Shown here: piece by piece, positions 3,299 through 49,834 of the stretch
Position numbering within the stretch: position 1 is the stretch's first letter
Layout of the letters: every line of letters begins with the position of its first letter
Source: Lepidodermella squamata
Lineage: Eukaryota; Animalia; Gastrotricha
Reading direction: 5' to 3'
Length of the DNA: 64,000 nucleotides
Assembly: GCA_047495785.1 (NCBI GenBank)
Contig: JBLDXI010000029.1
Coordinates: forward strand, 3,658,001-3,722,000
Notes under the pieces: model-generated
Told to the model about the DNA's origin: nothing
The model's input: the letters and a program-made list of their open reading frames with translations, nothing else
Database searches by the model: none
Made by a program: the position numbers and the translations under genes

Positions 3299-3345
3299 TT
3301 CCTTTCCTTTCCTTTCCTTTCCTTTCCTTTCCTTTCCTTTCCTTT
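3299..3345. repeat. (CCTTT)n pentanucleotide microsatellite
   Basis: About 9 perfect units seen directly. Confidence 0.95.
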
Positions 3346-4100
3346 TTACTGACATTTTACTGACACAAAATCGTAATGAAGGGTATGAAAGTACTGCGAA
3401 AAATGTATGTAGTATCAGAATAAATAACTGCTGGCAAGCTGGTCATTTTCAAGAAAAATAGTTGGTTCGCACTTGGTAAGGCAACAGTCACAAGCGAGAT
3501 CAGAGTTCGATGTAATGGGTTCGAAGATGAACGGCTGAGTACTTGAAGCAGCGGAAGTACAATCGGGGCAATTGCAACCCAGGGCGTCGAAATCGAAATT
3601 TTTCGAATCATAAATGTTGTTGTAGTAGTCGAGATTTGCCAAAGAAATTATCGACAGGATTCAAACCACCGACTTTGCTTTGTTCGCGGAAACATACGAC
3701 TCAATGGTCGGCGGCGTGGTGTCAATTCGCGACGTAGAATGCGAAGGAGGAGCAGCATCGAACGGGCGAGATTCAAGGCTAGAAAAACAGCCGCGGTTCG
3801 ACTTGATCGAGCGTCGAAATCGCAGAACACGAACAGTGGAATTGCTCGGAATTGCGGAATTCCTCCTTCTAATAGCTCAGAAATGGTTCAGCTACAGGGG
3901 TCACGTGATTTTTTTTCTGAATTTAATGTCGAATGCCAACTGCAAAGGTACATTGCTGGTGAACGTAATTGGCAATCACAACGCCTTTTTGTAGTTCAAA
4001 TTATTTTTTTCAGAACCGTCTTCTTCAACGCGTCGTAACATAGTCCTTGATTAGTTAATTCCCTAGGTTTGAAAAATTTGCAAAAAAGGTCTCGGTCGTT

Positions 4101-4871
4101 ACCCGGCTGAAGCTAGCAGGACGTATCTTGCAGGATTGTGTTCCGCTCATTTTCGTTCTTGTGCCACCCTTGTGCCATCAGTCTGAGGGCCTAAATAGTT
4201 TATCCAGGTGTATTCCAGAGATTGCTGCATCGATTTCATCAAGTAATTAAGGATTGACGCAATTAAGGGTCACAGTACATGCGCCCTGTTCTAAATTAAC
4301 CTCGCAGGATACTGTGCCAGTCATAAAACTTGGTGGACTGGGGTAGAATTTTGCGCCGATTACGAATATGCAATCCTCTTGCGTGTCCAATCTGCACAAA
4401 ATTCGATTTGTGCCATTATTTGTGAAAATAAGCAATAAAATGACCCATCACGTGACCTTTGACCTCAGGTGAGCTTGTGCCGGCAATGCAGGATTGACCA
4501 ATCGATAGAGCGGGGTCGATTACCCTAGTTTGCCAATTGACAGCCCAATGCAATCAAAATTGAGTGTGGAAAACGTAGCCGAAATACCGTAAAATATCAA
4601 TTTTTAGCACCGCAGGGTGACTACAACAAAAAGTGGGTCAAACACCCTTGCAGGATTGTGTGCCAGGCATTATGATATGACCGTCTAGACCAGTTTTCGG
4701 CCCTGATCACGAATTTCAAGTCCGTTTGCGTAACCGGAGCCGGCAAATCGGTTATTTTGCCTGATTTATGAGGAAAAACCGCGAAAATTGGCTTGTCACG
4801 TGACCTGTGACCCCAGGTGTGCCTGTGCCAGTGGCGCAGGAAGCGCCATTCGATCGGGCGTGGTCGAAAAC
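4101..4871 (+). repeat. Left terminal inverted repeat (~770 bp, with internal subrepeats)
   Basis: Reverse complement of 13828-14598; weaker similarity extends to ~4932. Confidence 0.95.
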
Positions 4872-6227
4872 ACTTTCTGTCAGCAGGGCAGCTCTAGGCA
4901 ATAACATTTGATAATTTAAAACGTTACTGAAATTAGCCGAAATAATATATGGATATATTTTTCCAATGTATTTTCAATTTGAGCGGTTAGCAGAATGCGC
5001 TTTCACAGGCGATTTTATCCGATTCTCTGCTGATTTCTCTGCTGTTTCTTTTTTTTTACATGAAATTACAATTACAGAATGCTGAGATGAAAATATTTGC
5101 CACATACAATTTGGTCTACTAATTATCGACGGGCTTTATTATACATTGAGCCGCCACTACTACAAGTGATTGCCGATAACAGGTGTGCGCTAATAAAATG
5201 GGCGCCTTCTTCGAAAGTTATTACACGCAATAAAGCCCCTCCCGCGTACGCGCAGGCGTACTGACTACTGACCGACAGATTTGTTTGGCCTATTCTTGCT
5301 AATGAGTATGGGGGCATAGGCGACTAGAGAAATTCGCAGAATTGATCGAGGTCATTTTGCGGTGTTTAAAGAAATACGTTGCTTATATTTGGTGAAAAAC
5401 ACCGTTTTTTCTCTCAAAAAAGCGAAATTGACGATGCAGCTCTTTAATTTTATCCTACTACAGCCTACTATGCGCCCCCACCTTTCTCGAGCCTAACGCT
5501 TAAAATCTGTAATAAAATCAATTTACAAAATGCGGACACTTTTTTAGAAAATATTTTGGATATTACCGATAAATACATTTGAATCTCCTAATTAGTTACA
5601 CTAGAGGGTGACTCAGATGCATCCGGTTAACAGGGCCTTGAAGATTGGGATGTCAAAGCCAAAAAGTAAGTATTTTCTGTTTATTATTACCTCAGTATTT
5701 CGCGGCTGTAATATCTGCGATATTGCCGATGTTAAAAGTGTCTTAAATTATCTATTATCGCCTATTGAGGAGTTCGCAGTCACAGGAAATGAGCATACAT
5801 ATTGAGCATGTTCGAATAGATTGGGCGCTCTCGGGTTTCATGTTCATTCTGAATTTTAGGAAATTTTGAGAGTATTTCTAATTTTTTCAGCTTTCTCCAC
5901 ATTTAAATTGAAACCCGTAAGATATTCCCGAGGAGGGTCGGCCGGAGGCTATCGCCGTTTTCATAATTGTTTGCGGTCTTACTTATAGTTTTAATTAATT
6001 CTCACAAAACTGTTTTTTTGGATTTTCTGGAATTTTACGATTGATGAAACAATAAACATGAAAGGCCTGTTCCTCATCTTCAGGTCGCGGCGTAGTCGCC
6101 ATTATTTAAAAAATATTCGAAGATGTCAACTTTTTTATACATTTGCGTTTGGTTCAATTTCAAATTGAAAATTGAAGTCCTGATCAGTCGATATATATTC
6201 AACCTATATTTTTCAGGGCGCAATGTG

Positions 6228-9200
6228 ATGTTCAAGCCTATCGGTTTGTTACTGCTGTACCTGGTGATGCTGTCTATAGAGGCACCTGCTGCCAGTGCTG
6301 CTCGGCGGAGGGCCAAGGACAACAGGCCAATCGATGACAAAAAGCTGCTGGATTTCTTCAAAAAAAATCCTGGTCAACTAGTTTCAGGTGATAAAAATGG
6401 GATATAAGTAATTGATGGAGATTTTAATAATGGAATTCGTAGGTTGGCGACGGCACGAGTCCGTTGTAGGGCGGTTGGCAGCTCGTCTATTCAGTGAAAA
6501 TGACGGTCCACTTCGCCACAGGCTCTACACGCACATAGCCAATAACCATCCTCAGTTTCTCAGCAGCGAGTCGACTAGTAACAGCTCTTCGTTGACCGAG
6601 TCATCGGAGGCTCCAATCATCAGGAATAAGAAGGTGATGGAAAAAAAATCGCCAGCGACAATACCGGAGGCTGTCGATGAGTTCCAGTTAACGCTAGAAG
6701 AAGTTGCGCCTTATCTGCCATCAGCTCGTCAGTCCAAACACCTGAAGCCAGGTTGGACAACCCTATTTCAGTCGAAAATGACCGCAGAAGTCCGCAAATG
6801 CGACGTTAAACTGAAATACAGCGACGTGACCAAGAACGGATCATCGGTAACTTGTGCTGGGTATTGCCAGGCAGAAAGTGGTTGCCGCAAGTTCAAGTTC
6901 AGGTTCAACCCCAGGCAACTCAATCAGGATAATCGTATTCCTGTAACGGTAACCATTATTGGGACACTGGTGCATGAGCCGGTTACGCCACGAACCATCC
7001 AAACGCGAGGTGTTGCTCGAAAACAGTTGGCGAAAGAGCTACGACAGCAGAAACCCGCGGCCTACCTATGGGCTTTGCTCGATCAGGCTCACAAAAGAAG
7101 AGTTCGAGGTGAATTTTTTATTTTATTGCAAACTGCGCGCTGTTGGCCAGCCTTTAATTTTCTTGATCGATATTGAAGCGCTCACGAACACATGCTGTTA
7201 GCCTATAAATAATGTCGTCAGCTAAGAAGAAATATTTCGAATATTTTCTTCCGAGACTTCTCATATTATCAAAATAATAGATTTGTAAAATCTGAACTTT
7301 AAATCAATATCGGTTGTAGTTAGCACGGGAATCCTAAAATAAAGGTGCCCACTTTTCATACCCGAATATTTTTATAACACCGCATTGATTCGACTTCCGA
7401 GTCAGTTGTAGTTTTGGTTCGGTGTTCGAAATGGAAAGACGAAATGTGTTATTATTCGATATTATTTTTACATAAAGTTAGCTGGCTTTTTCTTACTGGT
7501 TATGACCTGTATTTTTCCTTTTACAAGGAGAGTTTGTGAATTTGGCTGCTATACCAAGTGAGACCGTTCTTCAGAAGATATCTTCGGATCAAAACTTGGA
7601 GCAAAGAATGCACGAGAATCCATACATTGACCTCTTCTTGTGGCTGGTTGATCAAATGACGCTGGACGATGAGCTACGGTACGCTCGAGGCGTCTCAATG
7701 CTACCGCTTGGCGTAGTACTTGGCTACGATCGCCAATTTCGGCTGGGTCAGACATGGGCTCGGCAAGCGAGGAGATCCCACGTTTTTCATGTTAATTCAA
7801 CGGGTGAAGTCGTTGCGGATGATTTATTAACTGGAAAACGGGTTTTCCTATACCTGCTCTGCATGCGTTGTCCAATGCTGGGTGAAAGTGGTCCCAAGGT
7901 TCCGATGGGACAGTTTTTCCTCTCTGACCAGCACGCATTTTCCATCTCCAATGCACTTCAGGTACTTTGGAGCACTTGGGATGATGTAGTAGGCGGCAAA
8001 GTTCTGGCTCCTTATGCGGTGGTAACCGATCATTCTTTTGCCTTGATGCAAGCTGTAGCACGATGTTATAATCAATGCCGCCTGCAGCGAGTTCTCAACT
8101 ACACCTTTTCAGCCCTTCGCGATTCTTCTGGGAAAGTTCAAAGCGAGATCCAGTCTGATTTGGGTCATTTCACGTTGCTCGTCCTTTGCATGGCTCATCT
8201 ATTCAAAGAAGTCATGGGAATTTTGAATTCAAAAGGAAGAAAATACTTGCAAAAGCATGTCAAAACCTTTTTTATGCAATGCTTCGCATTTCTGCAGAGT
8301 GCTCAGAACCTTGGTCTGGCTCTCATGATTTTCCACCTGATGTGCAAGGTATTCGATACCGAGAATTATGGCGAAGACGTTGAGTTGGCTATTAGCCATC
8401 TAAACTCACTGATGCAGATCTACGCAGAAAGTATGCCAAAAGCCGAGGTTCCCATACAAGGAGATGAAGAATTTGTTGAAGATTTAAACGGTGAAGCTTG
8501 TTCGAATATCATAGCTGGGCCAGAGGATTCCAAAGAATTTCAATGTGGGACATATAAAAAGCTCTCGGCCTGTTGTGGAATGTTTTCCTACATTCGGGAA
8601 CGGTCGATTGACGACTCAATTCCAGCCGCAGATGAAATGGAAGCTGATGGTGATTCAACCCGCAATATCTTCTACGCGAAATTCGCAATGGATGCGCTTC
8701 TAGACAGACTTTTGCCGCTTTTTCCTCTTTGGTCTGCTCTCTTTGTTAGCGGAATTGCAGCGAAGCGTTTGTGAGTTTTAATAATAAACTATGAATAAAA
8801 ACAATTTCGATCACTTGGTGCTCTTAAATTTGAAACGTAGTTCAGTATTTTAGTCACATGGCACCCTGGGTGGTTGAAAGTAGTAGAATGGACTCGTAAA
8901 AATATTTTCAAATCTTTCAGTCCCAAATGGGAAAAGCCGCCTGGTCACTACACTAATGGGGCAGTTGAAGCAGAAATAAATACAACGAAGAACGTCATCT
9001 TGGGAGGTAAGAAGAAGCAGTCAATTGCCGCTGTTGTACGAAAGCTGGAAGTCAGCCAATCTGGCCGTCTGGCAGCAATCGAGCTCTCCGACGAGATGCC
9101 GGCCCCACAGAAACGAAACAGACAGGCTGATACTGCTGATAAAGAGGTCGAAAAATTTCGGAAAGAAAAACGTCGGCAAAGGATCGGATATGCTGCTCAA

Positions 9201-12200
9201 CGTCTGGTTAAGGAATTTTCTGCGAGGTTCGAAATTACTTACCAGCAAACATCCAAGATTAGCTCAGCAACGGAATCCTTGCCTCCTAAACGTCCCATTT
9301 GGGACCTTGGAAGTGATGGGGGTGTGGACGAGGCCTACAACGACATCCTCAGCTCTTCAACTTCTGATTCAGAACAATCCGACTTCTCTGTGTCTGATGA
9401 CATTTTGGGATGTGTTTTCACGCCTGGGACCTCAACTGGTCCAATGGCAGGAACCTCGACTGGTCCAACAACTCGAAGCTCGGCTGGTCCAATGGCTGGG
9501 ACCTCGACTGGTCCAAAAACTCGAAGCTCGGCTGTTCCGACAACTGGAACCTTGACTGGTCCAATGGCAGAAACCTCGACTGTTCCAACAGCTGGAACCT
9601 CGACTGTTCCAACAGCTGGAACCTCGACTGGTCCAATGGCAGGAACCTCGACTGGTCCAATGGCTGGAACCTCGACTGGTCCAATGGCTGGAACCTCGAC
9701 TGGTCCAACGGCTGGGACTTCGGAAAGACCTGCGCGTGGAACTGGAAATGACCAACGCGGGGCTTCGAAATCGGTCATCGTTACTGAAACAATGTTGTCA
9801 GGTGGCGTATATTTGCTGCAAAACGGAGGGAGTGTTAAAATTTTCTCAACCGATAAAGAAGAGTTCTATCACGTAACCAGCAACACGTGTGCAGTGGACA
9901 GCCTGATTAACGCCGTGTCCCATTGCGAAATGGAGCGTTTCTGTGGGTCCGAGCTGGTGGACTATCTGAGGAATCTAAAGGACGCGGCTTCCAGTGAAAA
10001 CGGCGAGAGGATGGCTCAGTTAGCCAGATTCAGATTTATGGGCAGAGTGTTTCCGAGGAACAATGAAACTAGGTTGTTGCCAATTGATTGCTTCGGTCGG
10101 GTCATCGAAGTATCCCCTGATTCATCAATTTGCTGCCCAATTGATCATTACGAGATGCGAGTTTCCAATGTTGGAGATGGAAATTGTATGCTTTGGCTTA
10201 CGCAAATGTGTGAACTTGATGGCTGCTATTTATTGCGAGACCTACATCCGTGTGAAGAATGCCGTAAGCCGACTCAGATACAAAAAGTGGTTAATCCTGT
10301 CTTATTGGGTTCTATTGAGGCGTCAGTTTTCTGTCCCATTCAAGGCTGTTATCTATTTATTTCATTAATTTGTAGGGAAAATGCGCAGCACTATGAGGCT
10401 GTTCGAGCAAATACAGCTTTGCAAAGGGTGACTTTCCAAGCGCAAATCGACGCCTTATTTTTTGAGGACATTGTGATGTGCCGTTGCAAAAACCATCACC
10501 GAATGCTATCACCCGCTAGGCATCATGATCCAAGCAAGCCCCTACCTTTTATTGCCATCGAGTTTGAGTCGAGTTGGGAGTGGACAGCAACCACTGTTCT
10601 CAACCAAGCTCCCAAGTCTCTTGAAATGGAACACTTTTCGTAAGTCTTCATCTCAGTGTTGTAAATGAAGCCAAATGTCAGATCTCCTTTCCCCTAAAGA
10701 TATTCGCTTCACAGCGCTATTCTTTTCAGCGAGCCTAATCGAGCAGAAGGCAAGAGAACCGAGGATAGGGAAGGCTCGGGACATTACGTCACTATCAGGA
10801 TCATCGATGGTGACGCTTACTTGCTTGACGATCTTGTAGTCAGCTCACGTACACGGAAACCGTTTTGGCGAAAATTCGACAATGAGCTTGAGAAATTCTA
10901 TCGCCTTTACTACGCAGTTATTTTCTTTTACTGCTGTCCCAAACCTGTTTCGGCTCATGTTGCTACGCTCGTGCAATCTGTTCCATCTTCCAGGTGATTT
11001 TTGTGTTTTACTTTGAAGGACTTGTCTAGCTATATGATAATTTAGCGTCCCACTTCCACCTTCACCTCCTCCACCCTATTCCGAACATGCCCATGCTGCA
11101 ATGGATCTCAGCAGCAAAGAGTCACAGCAGCCCTCGGCTGTTGGGAAAAGCTCATTTTCTAGGTATAGAATGGCTGCCTGCTTATTGGCTTATTTATATG
11201 GGACGATATCGGGACTTTAATGTTATAACTATATAGACTGGCCGGTCTAGAGGCGATTTCCGAGTTGAGCAATTTCCAGTTTGAAATACCCTCACGATTG
11301 CAAGACAGCGGGATGGTCTTTGAAAGTTCGTCGATAGTTTCGGCTATGGATGATGAGCCGGCCTCAAGTGTCAGCTCGGCTACAGCAAGTCAGCCCATGG
11401 CATCCCGGCGACGAAGGGCTCCAGAAACAACCCTGATACCCAAAGATTCGAAGCCTAGGAAAATTCCAAAGCTTGCGAATGCACCGGATCCACTGGAAAT
11501 TCCAACGTCAGCCTCGAAAGATTCAAAGCCTCGAAGAACTGTGAAGACCGTAAAAGATCCGAAGCCTCTCAAGACTACGAAGGCTCCCAAGGTTCCCAAG
11601 GCTCCAAGGTTCCCAAGGCTCCCAAGGCTCCCAAGGTTCCCAAGGCTCCCAAGGTTCCCAAGGCTCCCAAGGCTCCGAAGTCTCCGAAGTCTCCCAAGGC
11701 TCCTAAAACCATAAAAGGTAAGTCACGCAAGGGCGCTTGGACCTTCGATGATTTGGCTTCGGACGGATCGGAAGCCCAAGAAATCAGCTTCGCCTTGGGT
11801 CTCAGCGTGCTCGACCAATTGCCTGCCTCTGACAGTGCAAGTCATGACGTTGACCTAAGAAGCACCAGACCTTTTGACCTATTTGCTATGGGCATGGCCC
11901 CAATTCGCCAAAGTCTATGCCCAGGTAAATGGGTTTCTTATTTGGAAGCCATCAGCAATAAAGCAGCGACACGCTTCGAACTCCGAGCTAGGCGAGGCAT
12001 TTTGATCGAAGAGCTCTACTCTGATCTCGCTGTTCGACGTGAAGATGGGGGCAGAGTGTACAGCTTTGACGACATAAGGCCCAGTCAGTTGTGCTCAGCG
12101 ATCTTTGCTATTGACCGATGTGGGCTTACTAGGAAAGTTGGCAACTGCCAAAATGAATTCTGCACCTCTCCGCCTGGGTCAGAATTCATTACGAATCCGT

Positions 12201-12891
12201 TCCTCATCATCGAGTCGGATGGGTTTGCTTTATCAATTAATTTGTTCGGATCAATTTTGAATGCCAATTAATTCGTAGCTTTCCATCTACGCGGCAGCTA
12301 GAGGAAATGTTGGGCAACCGATTCGGTCAGACTTCGACCGATTGTCAATACGTGGAATCTAGCGGGTAAAATCATCTAAAGATTGTTAAATTAACGGCCA
12401 GGTTAAAATGTTGGGGTTGAAATTTGTTCAGATCGCCATGCCAGGGCACGAGGCTGATCAGTGTTGGCACTCATCATCACGAAGATGGCCGAGTTTCGCC
12501 CAGCCCCACCATCATCATCGCCATTGATGGTCTTGTAGCCCTTAGCAAATGCCTGAATCTAACGCAATTATCATTCCAGAATCTGAGGTAAATTTTTGTT
12601 AAGAAACGTAAAACCTGTAATATAGCAGTAATATCCAGCTATGAAGTCGTCGCCGTCGTGGCTAGGCAAAGCGGCACGTCAAACTACGGCCTCCTTACGC
12701 CTGGTTCTTTCCCGTTGGATTATACCCTTGTCACAGAGGGGAAGGCGAGACGGAATTACCTGCGGCCTGAATCACCGGCCTTGAAAAAATGGCTAGGCGT
12801 TTTTCTTATTCTTGGGCGTACGCCAGACGAACAGGAACTAGGCTGTCCGGAACCGGAACTGAATTCAGGCGACTACATATTTGACCGCTAA
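6228..12891 (+). CDS. Multi-exon NOF-like MULE transposase fused to a USP-like protease domain and a pseudo-USP domain (~1,880 aa; one frameshift at ~11604)
   Basis: Phase-compatible exons 6228-6387, 6443-7108, 7528-8770, 8921-10639 (possible 54 nt intron 10322-10375), 10700-10993, 11046-11162, 11237-~12222, ~12279-12365, ~12432-12587, ~12639-12891. Transposase motifs HVNSTG, VVTDHSFAL, CMAH, TNGAVE; protease motifs NTCAVDS and YSLHSAILF...GHY...LLDD. Confidence 0.8.
9424..9720 (+). repeat. Coding 24-bp tandem repeat (AGTSTGPM-type units) inside the transposase gene
   Basis: About 12 degenerate units of GGAACCTCGACTGGTCCAATGGCN. Confidence 0.9.
11580..11710 (+). repeat. Coding 9-bp tandem repeat (KAP/KVP/KSP); one 8-bp unit causes a frameshift
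   Basis: AAGGYTCCC units; GCTCCAAG at 11601-11608 lacks one C. Confidence 0.9.
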
Positions 12892-13243
12892 CTATTTTTT
12901 GCCGTTTTGAATTTTTAATCTCCGCTATTGGTTTTCGTTGGGATACACTAATATCTACAGGGTATCGCTGGACATTTATCATACCGCTTCACATAGAATG
13001 GAAACGATACACGATACAATACCATTTATACTCGCGCTGTTTATTAGGCATCTCTTATATATTTGAGATGCGAAGTCCTACTAACGTCTTATTTACACAG
13101 TCGGTGTCTAATTGCTTTTCCGAAGAGTGAAAATGATCCAAATAATTTTCCATTCTTATTTCCATTCTCCATTCCTGTTCAATTTGTACTATAAGAAAAA
13201 ACAGTGGAATTAATTACATTATAATCTGTAGAAAAAATAAAAA

Positions 13244-13731
13244 CGGAGTGCCTATTTGTACATAATTATGTGGTATATATTCCCTATTTGTACATAAATA
13301 TGTGGTATATTTTCCCTTTTTGTACATAATTTCCTATTTACAGATTTCACGCTAAAGGTTGATGTTTTATATGGTTTAAAAATGTTTTTCTAGTTAATCG
13401 CGAGCTGAGACACCTATTCTCAGCTATTAAAATTTTCTTACTTTCCCCTCACTTTGTCCTTAGATACATTTTAAATGAAATGCGGCTGTTTTTCGGTTCA
13501 TTTTTGCAATTTTGTATTTTGGCCAGTAGGTGTCTCAGCTCGCGATTAACTAGAAAAACATTTTTAAACCATATAAAACATCAACCTTTAGCGTGAAATC
13601 TGTAAATAGGAAATTATGTACAAAAAGGGAAAATATACCACATATTTATGTACAAATAGGGAATATATACCACATAATTATGTACAAATAGGGAAAATAT
13701 ACCACATAATTATGTACAGATAGGGACACTC
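13244..13731. mobile_element. Palindromic MITE nested in the large transposon
   Basis: 13251-13416 is the reverse complement of ~13527-13692; ~32 bp subterminal tandem repeats; AAATAAAAA on both flanks (possible 9 bp TSD). Confidence 0.75.
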
Positions 13732-13827
13732 AAATAAAAATTACGTAATAATATCGAAATACTTATTTTCAGTAACGTTTTAAATTCTCAGATTTCATTA
13801 GGCGAGGTTGCCCCGTAGAGAACCACC

Positions 13828-14598
13828 GTTTTCGACCACGCCCGATCGAATGGCGCTTCCTGCGCCACTGGCACAGGCACACCTGGGGTCACAGGTCACG
13901 TGACAAGCCAATTTTCGCGGTTTTTCCTCATAAATCAGGCAAAATAACCGATTTGCCGGCTCCGGTTACGCAAACGGACTTGAAATTCGTGATCAGGGCC
14001 GAAAACTGGTCTAGACGGTCATATCATAATGCCTGGCACACAATCCTGCAAGGGTGTTTGACCCACTTTTTGTTGTAGTCACCCTGCGGTGCTAAAAATT
14101 GATATTTTACGGTATTTCGGCTACGTTTTCCGCACTCAATTTTGATTGCATTGGGCTGTCAATTGGCAAACTAGGGTAATCGACCCCGCTCTATCGATTG
14201 GTCAATCCTGCATTGCCGGCACAAGCTCACCTGAGGTCAAAGGTCACGTGATGGGTCATTTTATTGCTTATTTTCACAAATAATGGCACAAATCGAATTT
14301 TGTGCAGATTGGACACGCAAGAGGATTGCATATTCGTAATCGGCGCAAAATTCTACCCCAGTCCACCAAGTTTTATGACTGGCACAGTATCCTGCGAGGT
14401 TAATTTAGAACAGGGCGCATGTACTGTGACCCTTAATTGCGTCAATCGTTAATTACTTGATGAAATCGATGCAGCAATCTCTGGAATACACCTGGATAAA
14501 CTATTTAGGCCCTCAGACTGATGGCACAAGGGTGGCACAAGAGCGAAAATGAGCGGAACACAATCCTGCAGGAATCGTCCTGCTAGCTTCAGCCAGGT
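13828..14598 (-). repeat. Right terminal inverted repeat
   Basis: Reverse complement of 4101-4871. Confidence 0.95.
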
Positions 14599-14876
14599 TC
14601 GGTCGTTTCCAGTTGTATTGAAACGAGTTGCCCTTATCTCTATGAAAATATGAAAAATATTAAATGGAATAAGTCACCGCTTTGAAATAAATGTCACGCG
14701 TCGATACGCGTGTCTTCAATCCTGTTGACTAGTCAACAATGTGTCCGAAAACAGAAACAAACTGAATCGCACGCCACTCTATTTTCCCGTAGACTGATTA
14801 TTATTATTTTATTTTTCATTTTATTTTAATTAATTTTTTATCGTGCACTCTTTACGCCTTCAGCCATCATAAACAA

Positions 14877-31996: not shown

Positions 31997-32009
31997 TGGT
32001 GGCAGCGGT
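31997..32009 (+). promoter_or_regulatory. Primer-binding site, tRNA-Leu type
   Basis: TGGTGGCAGCGGT is complementary to the eukaryotic tRNA-Leu 3' end (..ACCGCTGCCACCA); lies 4 nt after the LTR. Confidence 0.8.
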
Positions 32010-32135
32010 TGGTCTAGTAGCCCTCCGCTCTCAGCTCTCAGAAATTTTAAAACCGCGATAACTCTCTAGTCCCTACTTGTCTTCTCGTCAAAAGCATCAA
32101 CTTCGCCATTCATAAGGTAGTTATCCTTCCTCAAG

Positions 32136-35100
32136 GTGACCACCAGGGCAAAGTATCAGGAACAAGGGATTCCCTTGAAGGACGGTAAGACACCTCCAAA
32201 AGCAGCAAAACCCAAGACTAACAAACGGGCAGTGGATAACCTTAAAGAAGAACCTTTGGAAGAGGGAACCCTAGAGAATCTATTGCTCCCCACAGAAAAC
32301 TCTTCTTTAACCAAGAGCTCACCGAACCCGCAGGAACAGCGGCCTAGCTTCTTGCAAGCAGCAGGAAAATTTATAGCAAACAGCTTAAAGCGATCAAGCA
32401 CGATCAGAGAAGACGAGTCACCCAAGGTCGCGAACGTCGTTAACGAACCAACTATCAACTATCCACCAACTCCAAAAGGAAAGAAAAGTCTATCGTCCAA
32501 AGTAGTAAAGAAGACGGCAATGGCAGACTACAAAATACCAGCGTCAGTAACCTTCAAACATATCGAACCATTCGACGTTTCATCAGTGGCACGATTCGAG
32601 GAATCATTCGCAAAATTTGAAGCCGCAGCAAGAGCGGCTGGGGCCAAAGAGCCGGCGGCGGGCACCGACCCGTTCGCCGAAGGTGACAAACGTCTGACAT
32701 TTGGAGGCGCACGAACAATGGTCCGCTGCCTCCTGCCGGTACAGTACCAGGAAGATTGGCAGGACAGCTTTCTGGACCAACTCACAACTTACTCAAAAAT
32801 CCGGCAGAAAATTATGGAAGTGGTGGGACTTAACGTCAATAAACAAGCTCAACGCGAGGCGTTCGTCAAACGACGCCAACAGAAAGGCGAGACACCAAGA
32901 GAATTTCAACGAGAGCTGAAGCGGCTGGGGAAATGGGCGGAGATGACCGACGACGCGGGCTTCAGCAAGCTGCTAGCAGACACGTTTAAGGCGGGACTCC
33001 AACGAGAGTACCGCGCGTTCATCTACGACCATCCAGATGAGGACGAGCCGATCAACAACGACGATCCCAATTGGCTTCTCCAACAATGCGACAAATACGA
33101 TCAAAGAAAGCAGATCGTGGGCGAGGAACTGCTTGGTATCCATCAATTGTCAATAACAGACTCGGAGAAAACCTGCTACGGGTGCCAACAAAAAGGACAC
33201 ATACGGCGGAATTGCCCAAACCAAAGGCAGCAAGTTGCGCGCGGCGGACCCCCTCGTCAGATTCGATGGCCAATGAACCAATTAAGAACGAGTAACTACC
33301 GAAACGGTACAACAAAAGATTGCTGCTGTTACAACTGCGGACGGCCGGGACACTACGCAAAAGACTGCAGAGCCTCGGGGAACCAGGACGGCAACGGAAG
33401 GTTTCGACAGCCAACCACAACGCCAAGAAGAAACCCACCACCAGGTCAGAGAAGATACTTCCCGGTTCGCATGCTAGCGGTAAATAGCCTGGGGGACAGA
33501 AGTATGACCTTGGATGCTCAAGCAAATGGGAAAACCGTGCGATTCGTGGTCGACACGGGAGCGGCGGTTAGCGCAATCAGAGCCGATCTGGTTGATCCAA
33601 GAAAAGTGGCAATGCGTGAAATGGCGGCAGTAAACGCGGATGGGTCCGAAGCCACGATAAAAGGACAAGCATCTATCGAACTGGCTGCGGGACCGTTCAA
33701 AACAAAACAACCGTTCGTCGTAATGGAGGCGCTAAATGCGGAAGGCCTCCTAGGGTTCGACTTCATCAAAGACAATGGTATCATAGTCGACATACCACGG
33801 AACAGACTGTTGTGGAACCACACGGTGATACCCTGCAAGGCAACACAAGGCCCCGCAGCATTACGACTCCCGATGAGGGCAGTACGTATGGCACAAGAAC
33901 AAATCATTCCGCCGGGGGCAAGGTCAACCGTGCTGTGTAGCGTTCCAATGGTTAAGGACGGCGAGACGGTCCTCTTCAAGCCGGAAAACTCCATGGGCAA
34001 CGAAGAACCGACCTTGGTTTACGGACACACGGTGGATACGGTCAAGGACGGGAAGGTGCGCGTAACAGTCTTTAATATCGGCACCAACCCAGAGAAAATA
34101 CGCCCAATGACAGCCATCGGATGCGTGGAAAAAGTCGACAACAGCCAAATAAGGGCGACAAGGCGAAACGACACGCAAGGAAGTGGGGAACCCAAAGTCG
34201 ACCTGTCATCAAAAATGCTGACGGAGAACCAGCGCCGCCAGGTCAGAAATTTGATAAAAAGATACGCTGACATTTTCAGCAAGGACGACGACGAAGTCGG
34301 ACATTGCCCCTTCATCGAGCATAAGATCCGAGTATCAGGACCTCCGTTTCGACAACCACTCCGGCGCTCTACACATGAAGAACGCGAGATCATGCGCCGC
34401 GAGGTAGAAAGAATGGAACGAATGAAGGTCATAAGACCAAGCAACAGTAGTTGGGCAAGCGCAGTATGTTTGGTTAGAAAGAAGGACGGCAAGTACCGTT
34501 TCGCGATCGATTACCGCGTCCTAAACAAGCGGGTACACGAAGCAGGGTACGCAGACCCATTCCCATTACCAAGAATCGACGACACTCTCGAGGCGCTGGG
34601 CGGAGCAGCCTACTTTTCAACGTTCGACCTTCAATCAGGGTACTGGAACGTCCCGATGGAAGAGAAGTCGAAGGCGTATTCGGCGTTCATAACACCATGG
34701 GGCCTATTCGAATGGAAGTCATGCCCTTTGGATTGTCCAACGCCCCGGCAACGTTTCAACGACTAATGCAGTACGTATTCCACGGAATACTCTTCGAAGA
34801 AGTCCTGATCTACTTGGACGACATCATCGTCTTCTCCAAATCATTCGAGGAGCACATGGTACGCCTCGAGCATACGTTCGAAAGAATCCGAAAAGCGGGA
34901 CTCAAAATGAAGCCGTCAAAATGCCACATCGCTCAGGAAGAGGTCGAATTCCTGGGATACCTGGTATCCGGAAAAGGCGTCCGACCCGACCCTAAGAAGA
35001 CAGCTCCGGTCATCGACTACCCGGTACCTAAAGACGTGTCTCAAGTAAGGTCGTTTCTGGGCGTATGTTCCTACTATCGACGGTTCATCAAAAATTTCGC

Positions 35101-37165
35101 GAAAATCGCCGAACCACTGATCGCACTCACAAGGAAAAGCGAAGAAAAGTTCGAGTGGAATAAGGCGACCCAAGAAGCCTTCGAGGCACTCAAGGGTTTC
35201 CTAGTAAGCCCACCAATTCTTGGCTACCCGCAATTTGAAAAACCATTCAAAATCTACTCGGACGCATCAAATTGGGCCATCGGAGCGGTACTGGCACAAG
35301 ACCAGGCGGACGCCGACGGCACCATAAGAGAAGTGGTAATAGCATACGCGTCGAGACAGCTGACCAAAACCGAACGAAACTACTGCGCGACAGAACGCGA
35401 ACTTCTCGGAATATATTGGGCAGTAAAGACATTCCGACCCTACATCCGAATAAATGACATCGTCTATCTTTACACCGACCACAACCCCATCGTGCAGCTG
35501 GACCAGGCGCGGGACAGCACCGGGAAAATGGCTCGGTACAAAATGCTTTTGCAAGAATACAACATTCAGTACATCTACAAACCGGGCAAGACTCATACAA
35601 ATGCCGATGGGTTGTCGCGGACTCCACCGAACACGAGTGGCAAGGAAGGCGAACAAACAATACCGGCAATCCTCAGCCTTCAATTCGCGAATGAGTTAAG
35701 TACGGAAAACATTGCACGAGAGCAACAGCAGGACTCGAAAATCCAAAATCTCATAAATGACTGCAAGGCGGGACGAACTAAGATGTACACGTTCGAAAAT
35801 CAGCTACTGCGATTCAAATCAAGGCGAGAAAAGGGACCGGCAGAGGTAGTAGTACTGCCGGAAACACTGATTCAATCGGCAATCAAGCAAGCCCATTTAG
35901 AGCTGGGACATTTGGGAGCCGATAAAACGTGCGAGCACCTCAAGAACCGATTCTACTTCGCAGAGATGGAAGAAAGGACAAAGCGGACAATCGACTGCTG
36001 TGTACCATGCCAAAGGAGGAAAGAGCCGCAAGCCGATGTCGTACCCATGCAACATATAGCGGAAGCAGAGTACCCACTGCAGAAAGTATGTTGGGACGTC
36101 GCAAAACTAATCACGTCTTATAGCGGAAACAACTGCGTGCTGTTTATTGGGGACATTTTCACAAAGTATGTCAAAGGGTACCCCATGAAAAACGAGCAAA
36201 CAGCAACGATCGTACGACACTTCCTTCATTTCGTGAGCGAGCACGGTTGCATCGAGTCCATCCACAACGACCAAGGGCGGAACTTCGAGAGCCGAACCAT
36301 CACGGAACTTTGCAAAGCAATCGGCATCGAAAGGACAAGGTCCACGGCGTACCACCCTCAGGGTAACGGGTTCATCGAAAGATTTAACCGAACGGTGAAG
36401 GCCATGTTAGCCAAGGTGATCGACGAAAAGCAACGCGACTGGGATGTGCAATTACCGTGGAAGCTACAAGCCTACAACGCGGCAAAGCAAGATTCAACAG
36501 GCTATACACCCTACTTCCTGTTCCATGGAAGGCCCTTCCGATTCCCAACGGATGTCCTCCTCCAAAACGCGCCAAAATTCCGCAGTACGGACGCGTACGC
36601 AATCGAGATAAACGAACGGTTGCGAAAGGCTTACGCCGACACAAGAGCAAATGCGGAAGCGGCCCGTACAAAACAGAAGGCACAACACGACAAAGGAAGG
36701 AAGGAGCGAGAGGGCTTTACGATCGGCGAGCTCGTCCTCCTCCACGAACCACTACGGCAGCTTCACCTGTCCAGAAAACTGCACTGCCCATACACCGGGC
36801 TGTATACGATTGTCGCGAAGACAGGGCCGGTGACGTATGCCATTCGGTTACTGGACGGGCGGGCACCTAGCCGAATAGTTAACCTGGCTAGACTCAAACC
36901 GTTCAACGCGGACGAAGTCGAAACAATTCGAGAAGCCGCGGGACTCGTACCTGAGGAAATCGAAGAAGGGGAAGGGCCACCCCTAGGTATCGAGGACCCG
37001 AACGGCGAGATCATAACGGCACCGGTAACGGCAGACGCCACAGTAGAAGAAATGAGGCAGCAGTGCCCGGACGCGGGGATAGCAGAGGAACCCGAGGAGG
37101 TGGGTGGCGAGCGACCCAAACGAGCAAGGAGACAGCCTGATTTCTATCAGGCGGGGCAAGAGTAG
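32136..37165 (+). pseudogene. gag-pol: Gag-Pol of copy 1 with a single-base frameshift in RT (~34714)
   Basis: Same as 41545-46572 except AATGGAAG vs AATGGGAAG and a 3-bp indel at ~32460. Confidence 0.85.
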
Positions 37166-37200
37166 CTTTTAGTCAACCCCTTAATCTTTTGTTTTATAGA

Positions 37201-39891
37201 ATGTTGAAACCTAGTAACCTAGTAATAGTATTCGCGCTCTGGCACCACGCCGAGGGTGCGGAGCTACCACCCATTTTGTTCCCTAGAGCACTAGTAAGAG
37301 GCGTGCACAAAGGGTCGTTGTTCGAATTCAAGCACACGCTGCTATTCGCGGGCGGGGAAGAAGTACCATTTCGCGAAATATGGAACGAGCCAGATCCGTC
37401 AGTACGAGCATTCGCAGAATACTTTCTGGAAACAGAGCACCTTCTCATGCCACCACCTTTGGACGAGCTAAAGCGATGCTCATCGTTTCCGTCAACGTCA
37501 ACATGCTTCAACTTGGTCGGCTTCTCCGAAAAAGAATGCATCGTCAAACGAACTAAATACCCTAAACAATGCGCACTGGGAAACCCAACGACGACACCAA
37601 GAAAACAAAGGGTGCGACGAGCAGCTCACACGTTAGCAGAAGAGTCGGGCGAAACCGGCAACGAAACCACAATCGATCCAGAAACCCCACCAACGCCGGC
37701 AACCGCGGTGAACGCCACATCAATAATCACAAAAGTCACCACACCAACAACAGTAACGGCCGGCGTAACAACCGGCACACAAAGGACAAGCACGCCGAAA
37801 GCTACTGCGACCCGTAAGGTCCGAATAACGGCGAAGACAGCGACGACGCAAACCGTCACGGGCGTCGAATCGCCAACTGCGCGACGTAGTACGACCGGAG
37901 TTCAAAGTAGCGAGGCAAAGGCGGTTACCAAGGCGCAGGGCGAGCGCGGCGGGTCCAGAACCGTCCCGGGGACCACCACGCCGAGCACGGACGCGCCAAC
38001 AAAACGGAAAGGGGTCAAAAGGTCAGTTTCTTGGTTTTGCTCCAACTACTTCACAAGACTAATCTACACGGCGTTGGGTAACACCTGCGAAGAGGGAGTC
38101 GGCGAGGCAACGATGGGTACGGTACGAGAAGCCAGTGCGATAATGAAGGACGAGCAGAAAGGCATACGAATCAACGGAAAGACAAGTACCATCCTGGGAG
38201 AAGAAATCCACGACGTCGTCAACGGCCTGAAAAACAAAACAGAGGCAATGACGCAGCTGACGGATCAATTGTTTAACGACGATAAGAAATTGCAGCAATT
38301 CGCGGCGGCGCAGATGAGAGTCAATTCGCATCTCTATCACGAAATGCTAAAAATGTCACGAATGCTACGAATAACCAACATCATGCAAACAGCGTCCACT
38401 CGATCACTGAGGCTGCAAGACATACCACAGGGTTTTCGGGCGGCAATACGAAGAGACATCAAAAGAAAGGTGTCCGAGGAGAGCAAAATGTACGAAGCGG
38501 TCGTTACCAACAAACTTCCACTACTACTAAACCCCCGGTACGAATTCACCGCAGGAGATAACAACTTACAAGCCATGCTAATGGTAGACATACCGATTGT
38601 AGAGGGGCCGCAATGCGAAATGTACGAACTGGAGCCACTGGCAATGAAGATAAACGACACGTGTATATCGGCTACAAGACAGCATTTTCAGGAAGTTATC
38701 GCTATTAAATGTAATGGAGCCACAAAACTCGTGAACAAAATCGCGCTGGAAGAATGCGAAACCATTACGAATTGGGGAATAGTGTGCCCAACGGGGACTG
38801 GCGGATACGGCGCAAGACCAGCGTGGGCACAGGAAGATGATTCAGGAGCACCAGCGTTGCTCATCGAAACCCCGAATACTGAAAAGCAAGAACGAACCGT
38901 ATGTGACACAACGATGGGAGCTATCGAGGTCGGCGATCGAAGGTTTTTGTTAACACGGGAAATGGAATACGCGATCTTGCGACCGGAAGTCGAGCCATAT
39001 CAGATGGCGTTCGAAGGACAAACCAGGCGATACAAAGGTAAACCCGGACAAATCATCCAGCTACAGTGCCAGCAGAAATTGGGGGAGCTACGATACATCA
39101 GCGAAGACGAGGAAGGTAAACCGTACGAGCACTGGGTGGTGCAAGGAAGCAGAGCAACGCGGAGATGTTCCGACGGGGAACTCGAGGGACATGGTTTTCT
39201 CAAGATATACGACAATGAAACGGTAGAAGTAATCGGCGAGGAACAGGGATCTTTCGAAAAGCACGCGGCCGAACAAGAAGCGCGAATTTCGGAATTACGA
39301 CGACAATGGAAAGATAGTTCGTGGCTCGACAAATTGACAAAACGGGATGAAGTTATTAAGCAACTGGGAATTGAAGCGGTGGCCAACGGGCATTCGGCAG
39401 ATGAACACATCAAGAAAATGCAAGGCTATATGGCACAAATGAAGACAGAAGAGCATTTTGATTTTTGGGAAAAATGGACTATCCGGGTTGGGCTCACGGT
39501 AACATTCATCATCGCATTGGCAGATCTCTTTATAGCAATCGGACTGGCATACGGCATTCAAATGACAAATTCAGTAAGCAGGATACCGATCCGGCAACTG
39601 GAGGTTAGCAAAAAGACATTGGGGCCGGAGGAAATTGAGGCATCCGCGCCACTGCTTACAAGCCGGATACTGAACGATAACGGCAAAACAGCCAGAATTG
39701 ACTATCGAAAGACCGCGAAAAATCCACACGCTGAACTAAATGCGCAAGAACTGGAGGTTTATCGGCGATTGCAATATCGCTTACCCGAAACAAGCCCGGC
39801 AGAACTAACCGGTTGGATTCTGAACATCGCAAAAACGAACGGACTGTGGAGCGATGATCAAACAATGAAAAACTTCATCTGCACGGCCTAA
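37201..39891 (+). CDS. env: Envelope glycoprotein (class I fusion-protein-like), copy 1
   Basis: Splice acceptor at 37199 directly before the ATG; signal peptide; RVRR and RKGVKR basic sites; heptad repeat; Cys-rich region; C-terminal TM; N-glycosylation sequons. Confidence 0.85.
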   Translation: MLKPSNLVIVFALWHHAEGAELPPILFPRALVRGVHKGSLFEFKHTLLFAGGEEVPFREIWNEPDPSVRAFAEYFLETEHLLMPPPLDELKRCSSFPSTSTCFNLVGFSEKECIVKRTKYPKQCALGNPTTTPRKQRVRRAAHTLAEESGETGNETTIDPETPPTPATAVNATSIITKVTTPTTVTAGVTTGTQRTSTPKATATRKVRITAKTATTQTVTGVESPTARRSTTGVQSSEAKAVTKAQGERGGSRTVPGTTTPSTDAPTKRKGVKRSVSWFCSNYFTRLIYTALGNTCEEGVGEATMGTVREASAIMKDEQKGIRINGKTSTILGEEIHDVVNGLKNKTEAMTQLTDQLFNDDKKLQQFAAAQMRVNSHLYHEMLKMSRMLRITNIMQTASTRSLRLQDIPQGFRAAIRRDIKRKVSEESKMYEAVVTNKLPLLLNPRYEFTAGDNNLQAMLMVDIPIVEGPQCEMYELEPLAMKINDTCISATRQHFQEVIAIKCNGATKLVNKIALEECETITNWGIVCPTGTGGYGARPAWAQEDDSGAPALLIETPNTEKQERTVCDTTMGAIEVGDRRFLLTREMEYAILRPEVEPYQMAFEGQTRRYKGKPGQIIQLQCQQKLGELRYISEDEEGKPYEHWVVQGSRATRRCSDGELEGHGFLKIYDNETVEVIGEEQGSFEKHAAEQEARISELRRQWKDSSWLDKLTKRDEVIKQLGIEAVANGHSADEHIKKMQGYMAQMKTEEHFDFWEKWTIRVGLTVTFIIALADLFIAIGLAYGIQMTNSVSRIPIRQLEVSKKTLGPEEIEASAPLLTSRILNDNGKTARIDYRKTAKNPHAELNAQELEVYRRLQYRLPETSPAELTGWILNIAKTNGLWSDDQTMKNFICTA

Positions 39892-40190
39892 GACACAGAG
39901 ATAAGTAAGAAAATCAGCAGGAAGACATTACATCTTTTGTTTTAGTGTGCTTGGCTTGAAAATTTTGTTAAAGTATTGAAGAGATGACTCAGCGTGCGGA
40001 TGTCAATAGATAATCAATAAGTGCGCTCATAAATAATGTAGCCAGCAAGCGCAAACAAATTGTCGATAATGCTTATAAGTAAGAAAGCTTAAAAGTTTAA
40101 GTTACAGTGTGAAGTATTCTTGTACGTAAAATACTTACCGTGTGCAGTAACTTAGAGTGCTATCAAAGCTCGTAGCATCGCGACTCACAA

Positions 40191-41000
40191 ATGGAAAACG
40201 GATTCCAACATTTCTTTAACTTCGAGCTAAGGGTTATCGCTCAGGTTGGCTCCTTAGAAACGGTCGACGGGCTTGTCTCTTTCGTCGAAGGGATAATACA
40301 AGATTATATAAATCATCATCGCGGCTCGCCGACACGTCCAACAAACGGAGCAATGCGCGAATTGGCCGAACGGGCAGTAAGACGGGTGTGGCTGCAGCGC
40401 ATTCGTGAAATGGGCGGATGGGTCGACGCGCTGCAGTTAACACCGGACTCGTGGGCAGTGGGGAACCACCCGTTTTGGGCGGCTAGTTACCCCTTGACAC
40501 TAAACGACGACATCATCCGATTAGCTGAGAGATACAGGGACACGATCCAAGGCCGATTGATGGCGGCTTTCGATCAAGTATTGGGCGCCGTCAACGCGCC
40601 AGGAATACCGATAGCAGAGGTGGTTGCCGAAATACCAAACCACGAAGAAGAAAACGAGCGGTCAGATAGCGAGGGCGAAGGATTGATGACGGTGGACGAG
40701 GAACCTCCCTCATATGAAGAAGCAATGAGGGCGATACAGCAAGAGGCCACAATGAGCCCACGAGACGACGCCGAGACTACGGAAGACGACGGCGTTATCG
40801 AAACGACGCCCGAATCAGAGGAAGAACACGGCGTAAAAAGAGGGCGGCTCGAAGATCAGCCATCAACCAGCGCAGAAAGGCCAGCGGATGGCTACGACGG
40901 CAGCTGCAGTGAGCGTGCCATTATGCTTAGCTCGGAGTCAAGTTCAGACAGCGAGAACGACGCAGTCGAGCCAAATCAAAAACGCATAAAAAGGGTGTGA
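40191..41000 (+). CDS. ORF3 accessory protein (Bcl-2-core-like N-half, acidic tail, PPxY, C-terminal NLS-like motif)
   Basis: 269 aa sense ORF between env and the PPT; IREMGGW, PPSY, KRIKRV. Confidence 0.7.
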   Translation: MENGFQHFFNFELRVIAQVGSLETVDGLVSFVEGIIQDYINHHRGSPTRPTNGAMRELAERAVRRVWLQRIREMGGWVDALQLTPDSWAVGNHPFWAASYPLTLNDDIIRLAERYRDTIQGRLMAAFDQVLGAVNAPGIPIAEVVAEIPNHEEENERSDSEGEGLMTVDEEPPSYEEAMRAIQQEATMSPRDDAETTEDDGVIETTPESEEEHGVKRGRLEDQPSTSAERPADGYDGSCSERAIMLSSESSSDSENDAVEPNQKRIKRV

Positions 41001-41100
41001 AATATTCCATTTGTAAGTTTACGATTGCTAGGGCTTTAGTGAGAAATTTTGTTTGTGTGAAACATGATGCGGTGAAAAATCTATTTGAGGACAAATAGGT

Positions 41101-41117
41101 GAGTGGAGGGGGAGCTA
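41101..41117 (+). other. Polypurine tract
   Basis: GAGTGGAGGGGGAG just upstream of the LTR at 41118. Confidence 0.85.
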
Positions 41118-41401
41118 TGTGACCCTGGCGCATGGACAACTAATTGTCTATTCTGAAGGATCATCACCAGGCAAAGCTAAGCAACAGTAACTGTTTATGC
41201 CACGCTACCAGGAGACGCTAACAACAAACCAATAACAAACCAACAACAATCCAACAACAGAAGCTTCTAGAAGCTCCCAGCCCCTCAGCCGCTGCCTATA
41301 TAAACTTCCTCATTTGTGTGATAAAGTACTACTCACCAGAGTATATTAATAAAGCACTTGCTTAGCCAATCCAGTCTCTTGTAACCCTGAACCCAGTTAC
41401 A
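41118..41401 (+). repeat. Shared central LTR (3' LTR of copy 1 and 5' LTR of copy 2)
   Basis: Matches 31709-31992; preceded by the PPT and followed by the PBS. Confidence 0.97.
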
Positions 41402-41544
41402 TAACTGGTGGCAGCGGTTGGTCTAGTAGCCCTCCGCTCTCAGCTCTCAGAAATTTTAAAACCGCGATAACTCTCTAGTCCCTACTTGTCTTCTCGTCAA
41501 AAGCATCAACTTCGCCATTCATAAGGTAGTTATCCTTCCTCAAG

Positions 41545-46572: not shown

Positions 46573-46607
46573 CTTTTAGTCAACCCCTTAATCTTTTGTT
46601 TTATAGA

Positions 46608-49298: not shown

Positions 49299-49834
49299 GA
49301 CACAGAGATAAGTAAGAAAATCAGCAGGAAGACATTACATCTTTTGTTTTAGTGTGCTTGGCTTGAAAATTTTGTTAAAGTATTGAAGAGATGACTCAGC
49401 GTGCGGATGTCAATAGATAATCAATAAGTGCGCTCATAAATAATGTAGCCAGCAAGCGCAAACAAATTGTCGATAATGCTTATAAGTAAGAAAGCTTAAA
49501 AGTTTAAGTTACAGTGTGGAGTAGGTAAAATTCATCCTGCCTTGTCTGGGCCCGCAGTTAAAGGTCCAAGTGTTGACGCCTAAAAATGCTATGGGGTACG
49601 TGAACTGAATTAATTCGAGTTGAAATATTAAAGTAATGAGTGAAACCTGTCATCGAGTCCAATTTTTGATGCACAAAGCTCTTCAATTTTATTTCATCAA
49701 TACTGTTCTAATACCGAGCTCACCACAGCAGTCCGAAAAATTGAGCAAATATAATACGAAGTCTTAATCCAGAAATATTCTGCTATTTTGCTATTGCGAG
49801 TCTCGTTTGTTACCAGCTCTACTTGACCGGTCCC

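Follow-up and report, generated by a model that had tools for sequence, protein, structure and literature searches.

A Mutator-type transposon of Lepidodermella squamata with a putative USP-type protease tail on its transposase

Does a cut-and-paste transposon carry a ubiquitin-specific protease (USP) on its own transposase? The question arises from a 64,000-nucleotide (nt) stretch of the gastrotrich Lepidodermella squamata (assembly GCA_047495785.1, contig JBLDXI010000029.1, positions 3,658,001 to 3,722,000 of the forward strand), here called the window, where a first-pass annotation had proposed a transposase fused to a USP-like cysteine protease domain that becomes visible after splicing. 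Positions 4101-14598 of the window hold a complete Mutator-like DNA transposon of ~10.5 kb. We think it probable that this is a young, NOF-like cut-and-paste element of the Mutator superfamily, with a single multi-exon gene that would encode a transposase and a very divergent protease tail of the USP (C19) type. A transposase with a USP-like tail is our best reading of the gene and is partly supported. The predicted protein would run from an N-terminal Cys/His region through a DDE-type transposase core and a repeat linker to a highly divergent USP-type (C19) cysteine protease domain of clan CA; other copies of the element would continue in frame with another linker and a degenerate version of this domain that lacks the His.

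The transposon and its gene

Mutator-like ends consist of long inverted repeats flanked by target duplications of 9-11 bp. Here the terminal inverted repeats measure 790 nt and are 98% complementary to each other, with weaker similarity extending on the left to about position 4935, and the identical 9-mer TCGGTCGTT directly abuts both ends of the element. We assigned the element to Mutator from this combination of long inverted ends and a 9-bp duplication, which is typical of that superfamily. The insertion is recent, its ends being 98% alike and its target duplication perfect. A tRNA search of both ends found none.

Exons B and C encode the predicted transposase (Table 1). By eye, candidate catalytic Asp residues lie in exon B at 7728-7730 (D300) and 8028-8030 (D400), together with a CxxH motif at 8187-8198 (C453xxH456). 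Exon C holds what we read as the last catalytic motif of the transposase, TNGAVEAEIN, with its Glu at 8967-8975 (E688/690). When a protein atlas spanning all families was searched with exon B, the listed family sets with MULE among them accounted for 89 of 100 hits, and the top hit had a model resembling the NOF-FB 120.7 kDa protein cluster. A single-sequence AlphaFold2 model of the transposase core was unusable (pLDDT 41). Exon A contains Cys and His residues and is possibly DNA-binding; it matched no Pfam family.

The fusion of transposase and protease parts is independent of any splice, because TNGAVEAEIN and the Cys box of the tail share one uninterrupted open reading frame (ORF), 8874-10643, in which exon C is read (589 codons, ending at the TAA at 10641-10643). 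The remaining parts are connected by eight predicted introns, all of them GT-AG and 51-75 nt long, except one of 419 nt. They are richer in AT (60-73%) than the exons (46-54%). Phase 2 applies to seven of the eight junctions, the exception being the first (7108|7528), which has phase 1. The first-pass annotation had held that the splice phases link the tail to the DDE exons, and we found this to be so: 7108|7528 and 8770|8846 are phase-compatible GT-AG junctions (the latter removing intron 8771-8845, GTGAGT..TTCAG, in phase 2), and the spliced product of exons A to E contains no stop.

The intron at 10640-10699 had likewise been proposed to connect the Cys and His parts of the tail, and its letters agree. 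It is canonical GT-AG, opening at 10640 (TC|GTAAGT) and closing, after a pyrimidine tract, with AG at 10698-10699 (CCCCTAAAG|A), and its removal joins the flanking exons in frame in phase 2, creating one Ser codon. If it were instead retained, the protein would end at the TAA at 10641, and the Cys and His boxes would never occupy one polypeptide. The read evidence at hand would allow this, as the only run that holds the stretch, X1, has the intron in place. This run behaves as DNA, because 0.94 of sampled words are present both on stretches with one and on stretches with three introns, and because its main contig is unspliced and identical to the window over 9995-10876, spanning the intron. 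Retention is nonetheless very improbable. The donor sequence GTAAGT fits the consensus perfectly, and the pyrimidine tract lies ahead of the AG; the intron matches six other predicted introns of the gene in size (51-75 nt) and is AT-rich relative to the exons; the 98 open codons beyond it are significantly USP-like, as described below; and the second domain of the gene is interrupted by an intron at the matching Ser|Tyr site and in the same phase. We infer that the intron is removed, which would leave a USP-like domain of ~360 residues.

Resemblance of the tail to ubiquitin-specific proteases

Direct reading of the sequence placed all three candidate catalytic residues where they had been annotated: Cys at 9888-9890, His as CAT at 10782-10784 in GSGHYVTI, and Asp as GAC GAT at 10827-10832 in AYLLDDLVV. 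In the ORF 8874-10643, the Cys has the context HVTSNTCAVDSLINAV (longer stretch, LLQNGGSVKIFSTDKEEFYHVTSNTCAVDSLINAVSHC), and the translation of exon D begins YSLHSAILFSEPNRAEGKRTEDREGSGHYVTIRIIDGDAYLLDDLVVSS. As a reference for USP spacing and conservation, we used a degenerate Cys-box DNA pattern to find 120 giant-virus loci, aligned 93 complete USP ORFs from them, and built a hidden Markov model (HMM). The three catalytic-type residues stand in USP order and at USP spacing: 280 residues separate Cys 31 from His 311 of the spliced domain, where the alignment to the viral USP HMM puts 279 positions. A USP His box has Y-x-L..G-H-Y, [ND]-D-x-x-V at 16-19 residues beyond, and a terminal Y-x-L-x-Y, and exon D follows this arrangement. 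The Cys box matches G-N-T-C-[YF]-x-N-S-x-L-Q weakly, with Y, M/N, and Q replaced. AlphaFold2 placed a helix two residues after the candidate Cys, at low confidence.

We measured this resemblance by chaining ungapped USP blocks in order with free spacing, in a long and a short block set, and comparing the scores with those of 5000 shuffles. The whole spliced domain gave z scores of 5.2 (long blocks) and 4.5 (short blocks), reached by 0-1 of the 5000 shuffles. Exon D alone gave 6.0 and 5.5, with four blocks scoring 30.6 bits, a value that no shuffle attained. Transposase segments behaved like the null (z about 0), the reversed domain scored 43.3 bits, equal to the shuffle mean, and the highest z among 250 real non-USP proteins was 3.78 (none at 4 or above). 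Taken separately, the Cys box scored 14.3 bits with a 16-column block (25 of 10,000 shuffles, p 0.0025) and reached p 0.04 with a 12-column block.

With the 93-USP HMM, hmmsearch --max returned exactly two hits on the spliced domain, colinear with each other, one at the Cys box (HMM columns 18-58, query 29-70) and one at the His/Asp box (HMM columns 297-327, query 306-334). Addition of the tail to the USP alignment by MAFFT matched 23 of 46 highly conserved columns, including both Cys pairs, the LPxxIxI strand, GHY, the ND-type Asp, and the terminal YxLxY. The best Pfam match of the Cys-box piece was a weak local one (E 0.24) to the catalytic-Cys region of Peptidase_C12. In the protein atlas, where the two exon pieces were searched separately, PF00443 UCH supplied the top three hits and 83 of 100 for the His exon (0.91-0.92), and 62 of 100 for the Cys-side piece, starting at rank 13 (0.84) and falling to about 0.80.

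From these results, chance is not a reasonable explanation for the USP-likeness of the His half, and the Cys box is a plausible one at the right place for a USP. The annotated USP/C19 hallmarks were therefore sustained in part: the His half is USP-like both statistically and in the atlas, and the motifs are colinear and correctly spaced, but the Cys box is weaker and the middle ~250 residues are unrecognisable.

Several results weigh against assigning the tail to the USPs. The family was chosen for testing after the motifs had been seen. The N-terminal 280 residues, taken alone and as a whole, are not USP-like (z 0.6 and 1.5, reached by 1215 and 393 of 5000 shuffles). The GLxNxG of the oxyanion type does not run directly into NTC: LQNGG (in LLQNGG), which the first-pass annotation had counted as part of the Cys box, lies 17 residues upstream and was joined to it only by MAFFT with insertions removed. 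The full hmmsearch score was 1.3 bits, attained by 27 of 2000 shuffles, and the local hhalign score had a p of about 0.01 (3.2 standard deviations above shuffles, reached by 4 of 400), scores in its global mode being meaningless. Pfam searches of whole ORFs and cut pieces left UCH and UCH_1 unmatched even at E 10, as did those of the transposase for MULE (PF10551); across all ORFs and pieces to E 10, there was no UCH, OTU, C48, or MULE, and the weak local matches were limited to Peptidase_C12 at the Cys box and a deaminase zinc motif (E 0.12). A PDB sequence search with four pieces gave nothing relevant, phmmer with a 286-residue piece against 1.84 billion representatives returned one spurious repeat protein only, and word-index searches with the domain, the transposase core, and the transposase end found no relative, nor did related-locus searches in metagenome and viral contigs. 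AlphaFold2 on the domain piece without homologues was unusable (pLDDT 31). Every splice junction was predicted from DNA alone, the sole read run containing the stretch being DNA. Finally, a second protease-like motif pair lies inside the domain, between the USP-like Cys and His boxes.

This pair, VGDGNCMLWLT and QHYEA, resembles the Cys and His motifs of OTU proteases (C85). With blocks derived from 20 viral OTU domains, it scored 21.9 bits over two blocks; 6-10 of 5000 shuffles scored as high (p about 0.002-0.003), as did 1 of 315 natural proteins. The protease unit might then be an OTU-like or other compact papain-like domain that uses the Cys of GDGNC with the His of QHYEA or GSGHY, leaving NTC as a chance look-alike; in a variant, an OTU-like unit would be nested within a USP. 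Besides the block score, the unit shared with the second domain begins near GDGNC (DGGR aligned to DGNC) and not at NTC, and Helitron and Ginger transposases often carry OTU domains (PMC2836005, PMC9741609). We give an OTU-like protease only a small chance, however. The Cys-His distance is 68 residues to QHYEA and 179 to GHY, both outside the 82-156 of the OTU set; Pfam OTU (PF02338) was unmatched; the atlas neighbours of that piece include no OTU family but do include UCH; and the blocks after the His (DDxxV, YxLxY) are USP-specific and significant. GDGNCML also lies ~100 residues past the candidate Cys, where, judging from the family consensus, USPs would have the QQDAxEFL helix.

A USP-type tail remains the preferred reading. 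A four-Cys module (10209-10262, C-x4-C-x8-C-x2-C) lies between the OTU-like motifs and is kept in both tandem domains. It bears a weak resemblance to PCxxC, the zinc motif of cytidine deaminases (Pfam PF00383, E 0.12; PDB 7fh4, E 0.4), which is probably a coincidental similarity of zinc ligands. An H-x-E lies 31 residues upstream of the module. We also considered a VTD/herpesvirus tegument-like identity and rejected it, as Pfam Herpes_teg_N was unmatched and the candidate His precedes the Asp, compared with the Asp-x-His that defines those domains (PMC9741609).

A second domain and other copies

The gene continues beyond the tail into a second domain (domain 2; Table 1), which we read as a putative degenerate paralogue of the USP-like domain (domain 1) without the catalytic His. 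The best local match between the two is the four-Cys module (z 3.5-3.9), and a colinear semi-global alignment gives z 2.0. It pairs (domain 2/domain 1) DGGR/DGNC, SPSPTIIIAID/KPLPFIAIEF, LS|YEVVAVV/FS|YSLHSAIL, GTSNY/GSGHY, and PLDYTLV/LLDDLVV, and the intron of domain 2 falls at the same place and in the same phase (Ser|Tyr) as that of domain 1. USP blocks were not significant on domain 2 alone. We tried SQLC of domain 2 as its Cys box and rejected it, as it aligns to the four-Cys module of domain 1 and not to NTC.

In this copy of the element, the reading frame shifts by one near 11603, inside a 9-nt repeat that encodes Lys and Pro (11558-11703, found by TRF). A different X1 contig (depth 102 of 288) carries an extra letter behind 11602, and a further contig lacks 8 letters at 11603. 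The repeat thus varies among copies. As the extra letter keeps the frame open, our reading of the repeat is that the copy in the window is the broken one.

The family looks multi-copy, because X1 contigs break at several points, diverged contigs occur at 8403-8633 and 11459-11794, and contigs ~93% alike are found in a second organism. The latter point to relatives of the element there; one of them covers 10597-10831 without insertions or deletions. Between domain 2 and the contigs of the second organism, we counted six synonymous and six replacement codon changes, the replacements mostly conservative, which hints at some constraint on domain 2. Contig depth peaks three- to fivefold at the 24-nt repeat that encodes the linker (9424-9722), and because of this rise the repeat must occur elsewhere in the genome too.

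The second domain also bears on whether the tail is a protease at all. It could be a zinc-binding tail, rich in Cys and without catalysis, or a pseudo-protease that has decayed, with a role in protein or DNA binding and with the catalytic-type residues being remnants or products of chance. The tail has 20 Cys in about 376 residues, its four-Cys module is conserved between the two domains, it had no profile or library match, domain 2 has clearly lost its His, and this copy is frame-broken downstream. We nevertheless hold a non-catalytic tail to be rather unlikely. Domain 1 keeps Cys, His, and Asp at USP spacing, the insertion is young, the X1 main contig matches domain 1 letter for letter over the long stretch given above, and the balance of codon changes in domain 2 likewise speaks against mere decay. 

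Relation to known systems and remaining features

The tail resembles USPs (MEROPS C19; PF00443 UCH, PF13423 UCH_1) in the order and spacing of its motifs: an NTC-plus-helix Cys box, two Cys pairs, a strand of the LPxxIxIxF type, YxLxxxxxF, GHY, DDxxV 16 residues past the His, and a terminal YxLYY. It differs from them in falling below every profile threshold, in a 17-residue insert before NTC, and in a second 17-residue insert that splits the His box. Its middle 250 residues are unrecognisable and unusually Cys-rich, and the USP fold itself is putative.

C-terminal Ulp1 (C48) SUMO-protease tails are known on Mutator transposases, namely those of KI-MULEs and of MuDR elements in hydra and lancelet (PMC2836005); we group the NOF-FB 120.7 kDa cluster with them. 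Like the Mutator/NOF transposases with Ulp1, the present element has long inverted ends, a 9-bp duplication, a DDE core with CxxH, and what would be a clan-CA cysteine protease tail in the same polypeptide. Unlike them, its tail has USP-type motifs, with the His 280 residues after the Cys. The catalytic order in Ulp1 is His-Asp-Cys. Peptidase_C48 had no Pfam match in the ORFs or pieces of the element (to E 10).

Helitrons and Helentrons carry accessory deubiquitinases of the OTU, VTD, and UCH types, for which a role in shielding transposition proteins from the proteasome has been proposed (PMC9741609, PMC11417382). The VTD domains of Helitrons are active deubiquitinases (PMC9741609), and UCH is stably carried by Helitron-like elements (PMC11417382). 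These elements share with the present one a transposon protein joined to a ubiquitin-type protease and the tandem arrangement of active and dead copies (the zebrafish DrT1 has two VTD domains), both of which are predictions for the present element. They differ in having RepHel where this element has DDE, and the Asp-x-His active site of VTD is unlike the arrangement here. The closest precedent for the domain pair is a Trichomonas vaginalis transposase, XP_001314237.1, on which a C19 domain was noted in 2010 (transposase_11 + Peptidase C19; PMC2836005). This too is a DDE transposase fused to a C19 domain, but the transposase is of the IS4/IS5 type, the host is a protist, and the C19 domain is detectable by standard profiles. 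Protease tails on transposases are thus already known, and a USP-type tail on a Mutator/NOF-type element, as predicted here, would be new; within a limited body of literature, we found no earlier report of one.

By analogy with Ulp1 on Mutator elements and with VTD and UCH on Helitrons, the most likely role of the tail would be to remove ubiquitin or a ubiquitin-like modifier. Its likely targets would be the transposase itself, which might thereby escape degradation by the proteasome, or chromatin and repair factors of the host at the site of transposition; a deubiquitinase with a self-stabilising or anti-silencing role, as first suggested for this locus, would fit the same analogy. The dead second copy could act as a ubiquitin-binding or regulatory module. 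It is conceivable, though we regard it as doubtful, that Mutator-type transposases carry a lineage of active USP-type deubiquitinases, so far overlooked and evolving fast, together with a dead copy and out of reach of current profiles.

Ubiquitin- or SUMO-type proteases ride on transposons of several superfamilies. If the present assignment is true, the exchange of Ulp1 for a USP on a Mutator-type element would show that what is needed is some ubiquitin-family protease and not one particular fold, in parallel with the use of OTU, VTD, or UCH by Helitrons. The element would also illustrate how such domains drift past profile detection. This copy, young and intact at its ends, provides a defined construct for studying protection of the transposase and action on host chromatin or repair factors.

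Table 1. Features of the transposon and its predicted gene, in window coordinates
Feature	Position	Strand	Remarks
Left target-site duplication	4092-4100	.	9 bp, TCGGTCGTT
Left terminal inverted repeat	4101-4890	+	complementary to 13809-14598
Exon A, putative N-terminal part	6415-7108	+	ORF 6412-7176; donor GAG|GTGAAT at 7109; start codon is a candidate
Exon B, predicted transposase core	7528-8770	+	412 codons
Exon C, predicted transposase end, acidic/Ser stretch, GTSTGPMA repeat linker, and N-terminal 280 residues of USP-like domain	8846-10639	+
24-nt tandem repeat, x12.5	9424-9722	+	encodes Thr/Gly/Pro-rich linker (GTSTGPMA units); TRF, 81% matches
USP-like domain 1	9798-10940	+	intron 10640-10699 removed
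Candidate catalytic Cys	9888-9890	+	TGT, within SNTCAVDSLINAVSHC
OTU-like motif pair	10170-10400	+	VGDGNCMLWLT (Cys 10185-10187) and QHYEA (His 10389-10391)
Predicted intron	10640-10699	+	60 nt, GT-AG, phase 2, 60% AT, three in-frame stops
Exon D, USP-like His half	10700-10993	+	YSLHSAILF, GSGHYVTI, AYLLDDLVV, FYRLYYAV
Exon E, Pro-rich linker	11046-11162	+	phase-compatible GT-AG introns 10994-11045 and 11163-11236
Exon F, Lys/Pro repeat linker and start of putative degenerate domain 2	11237-12222	+	frame break near 11603 in this copy
Domain 2, three further predicted exons	12279-12365, 12432-12587, 12639-12891	+	GTSNY in place of GSGHY
Internal perfect palindrome	13251-13692	.	166-nt arms, 100% complementary; 110-nt loop; 32-nt tandem repeats (repeat search and TRF)
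Right terminal inverted repeat	13809-14598	-	complementary to left arm
Right target-site duplication	14599-14607	.	TCGGTCGTT, perfect copy of left 9-mer

Other features of the window were noted in passing. The internal palindrome sits just inside the right inverted end, with arms partly made up of the 32-nt tandem repeats, an architecture that recalls foldback elements, with which NOF is associated in Drosophila. Inside the element and upstream of exon A, a short ORF (6123-6407) encodes a signal-peptide-like hydrophobic stretch (MFKPIGLLLLYLVMLSIEAPAASA); the single donor/acceptor pair tried gives no in-phase join to exon A. A perfect microsatellite, (TTCCT)x9.4, occupies 3299-3345, ~750 nt to the left of the insertion site. 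Farther along the window, from 32000 to 50000, the AT skew is strong and sustained (0.20-0.34) at a GC content of 45-54%.

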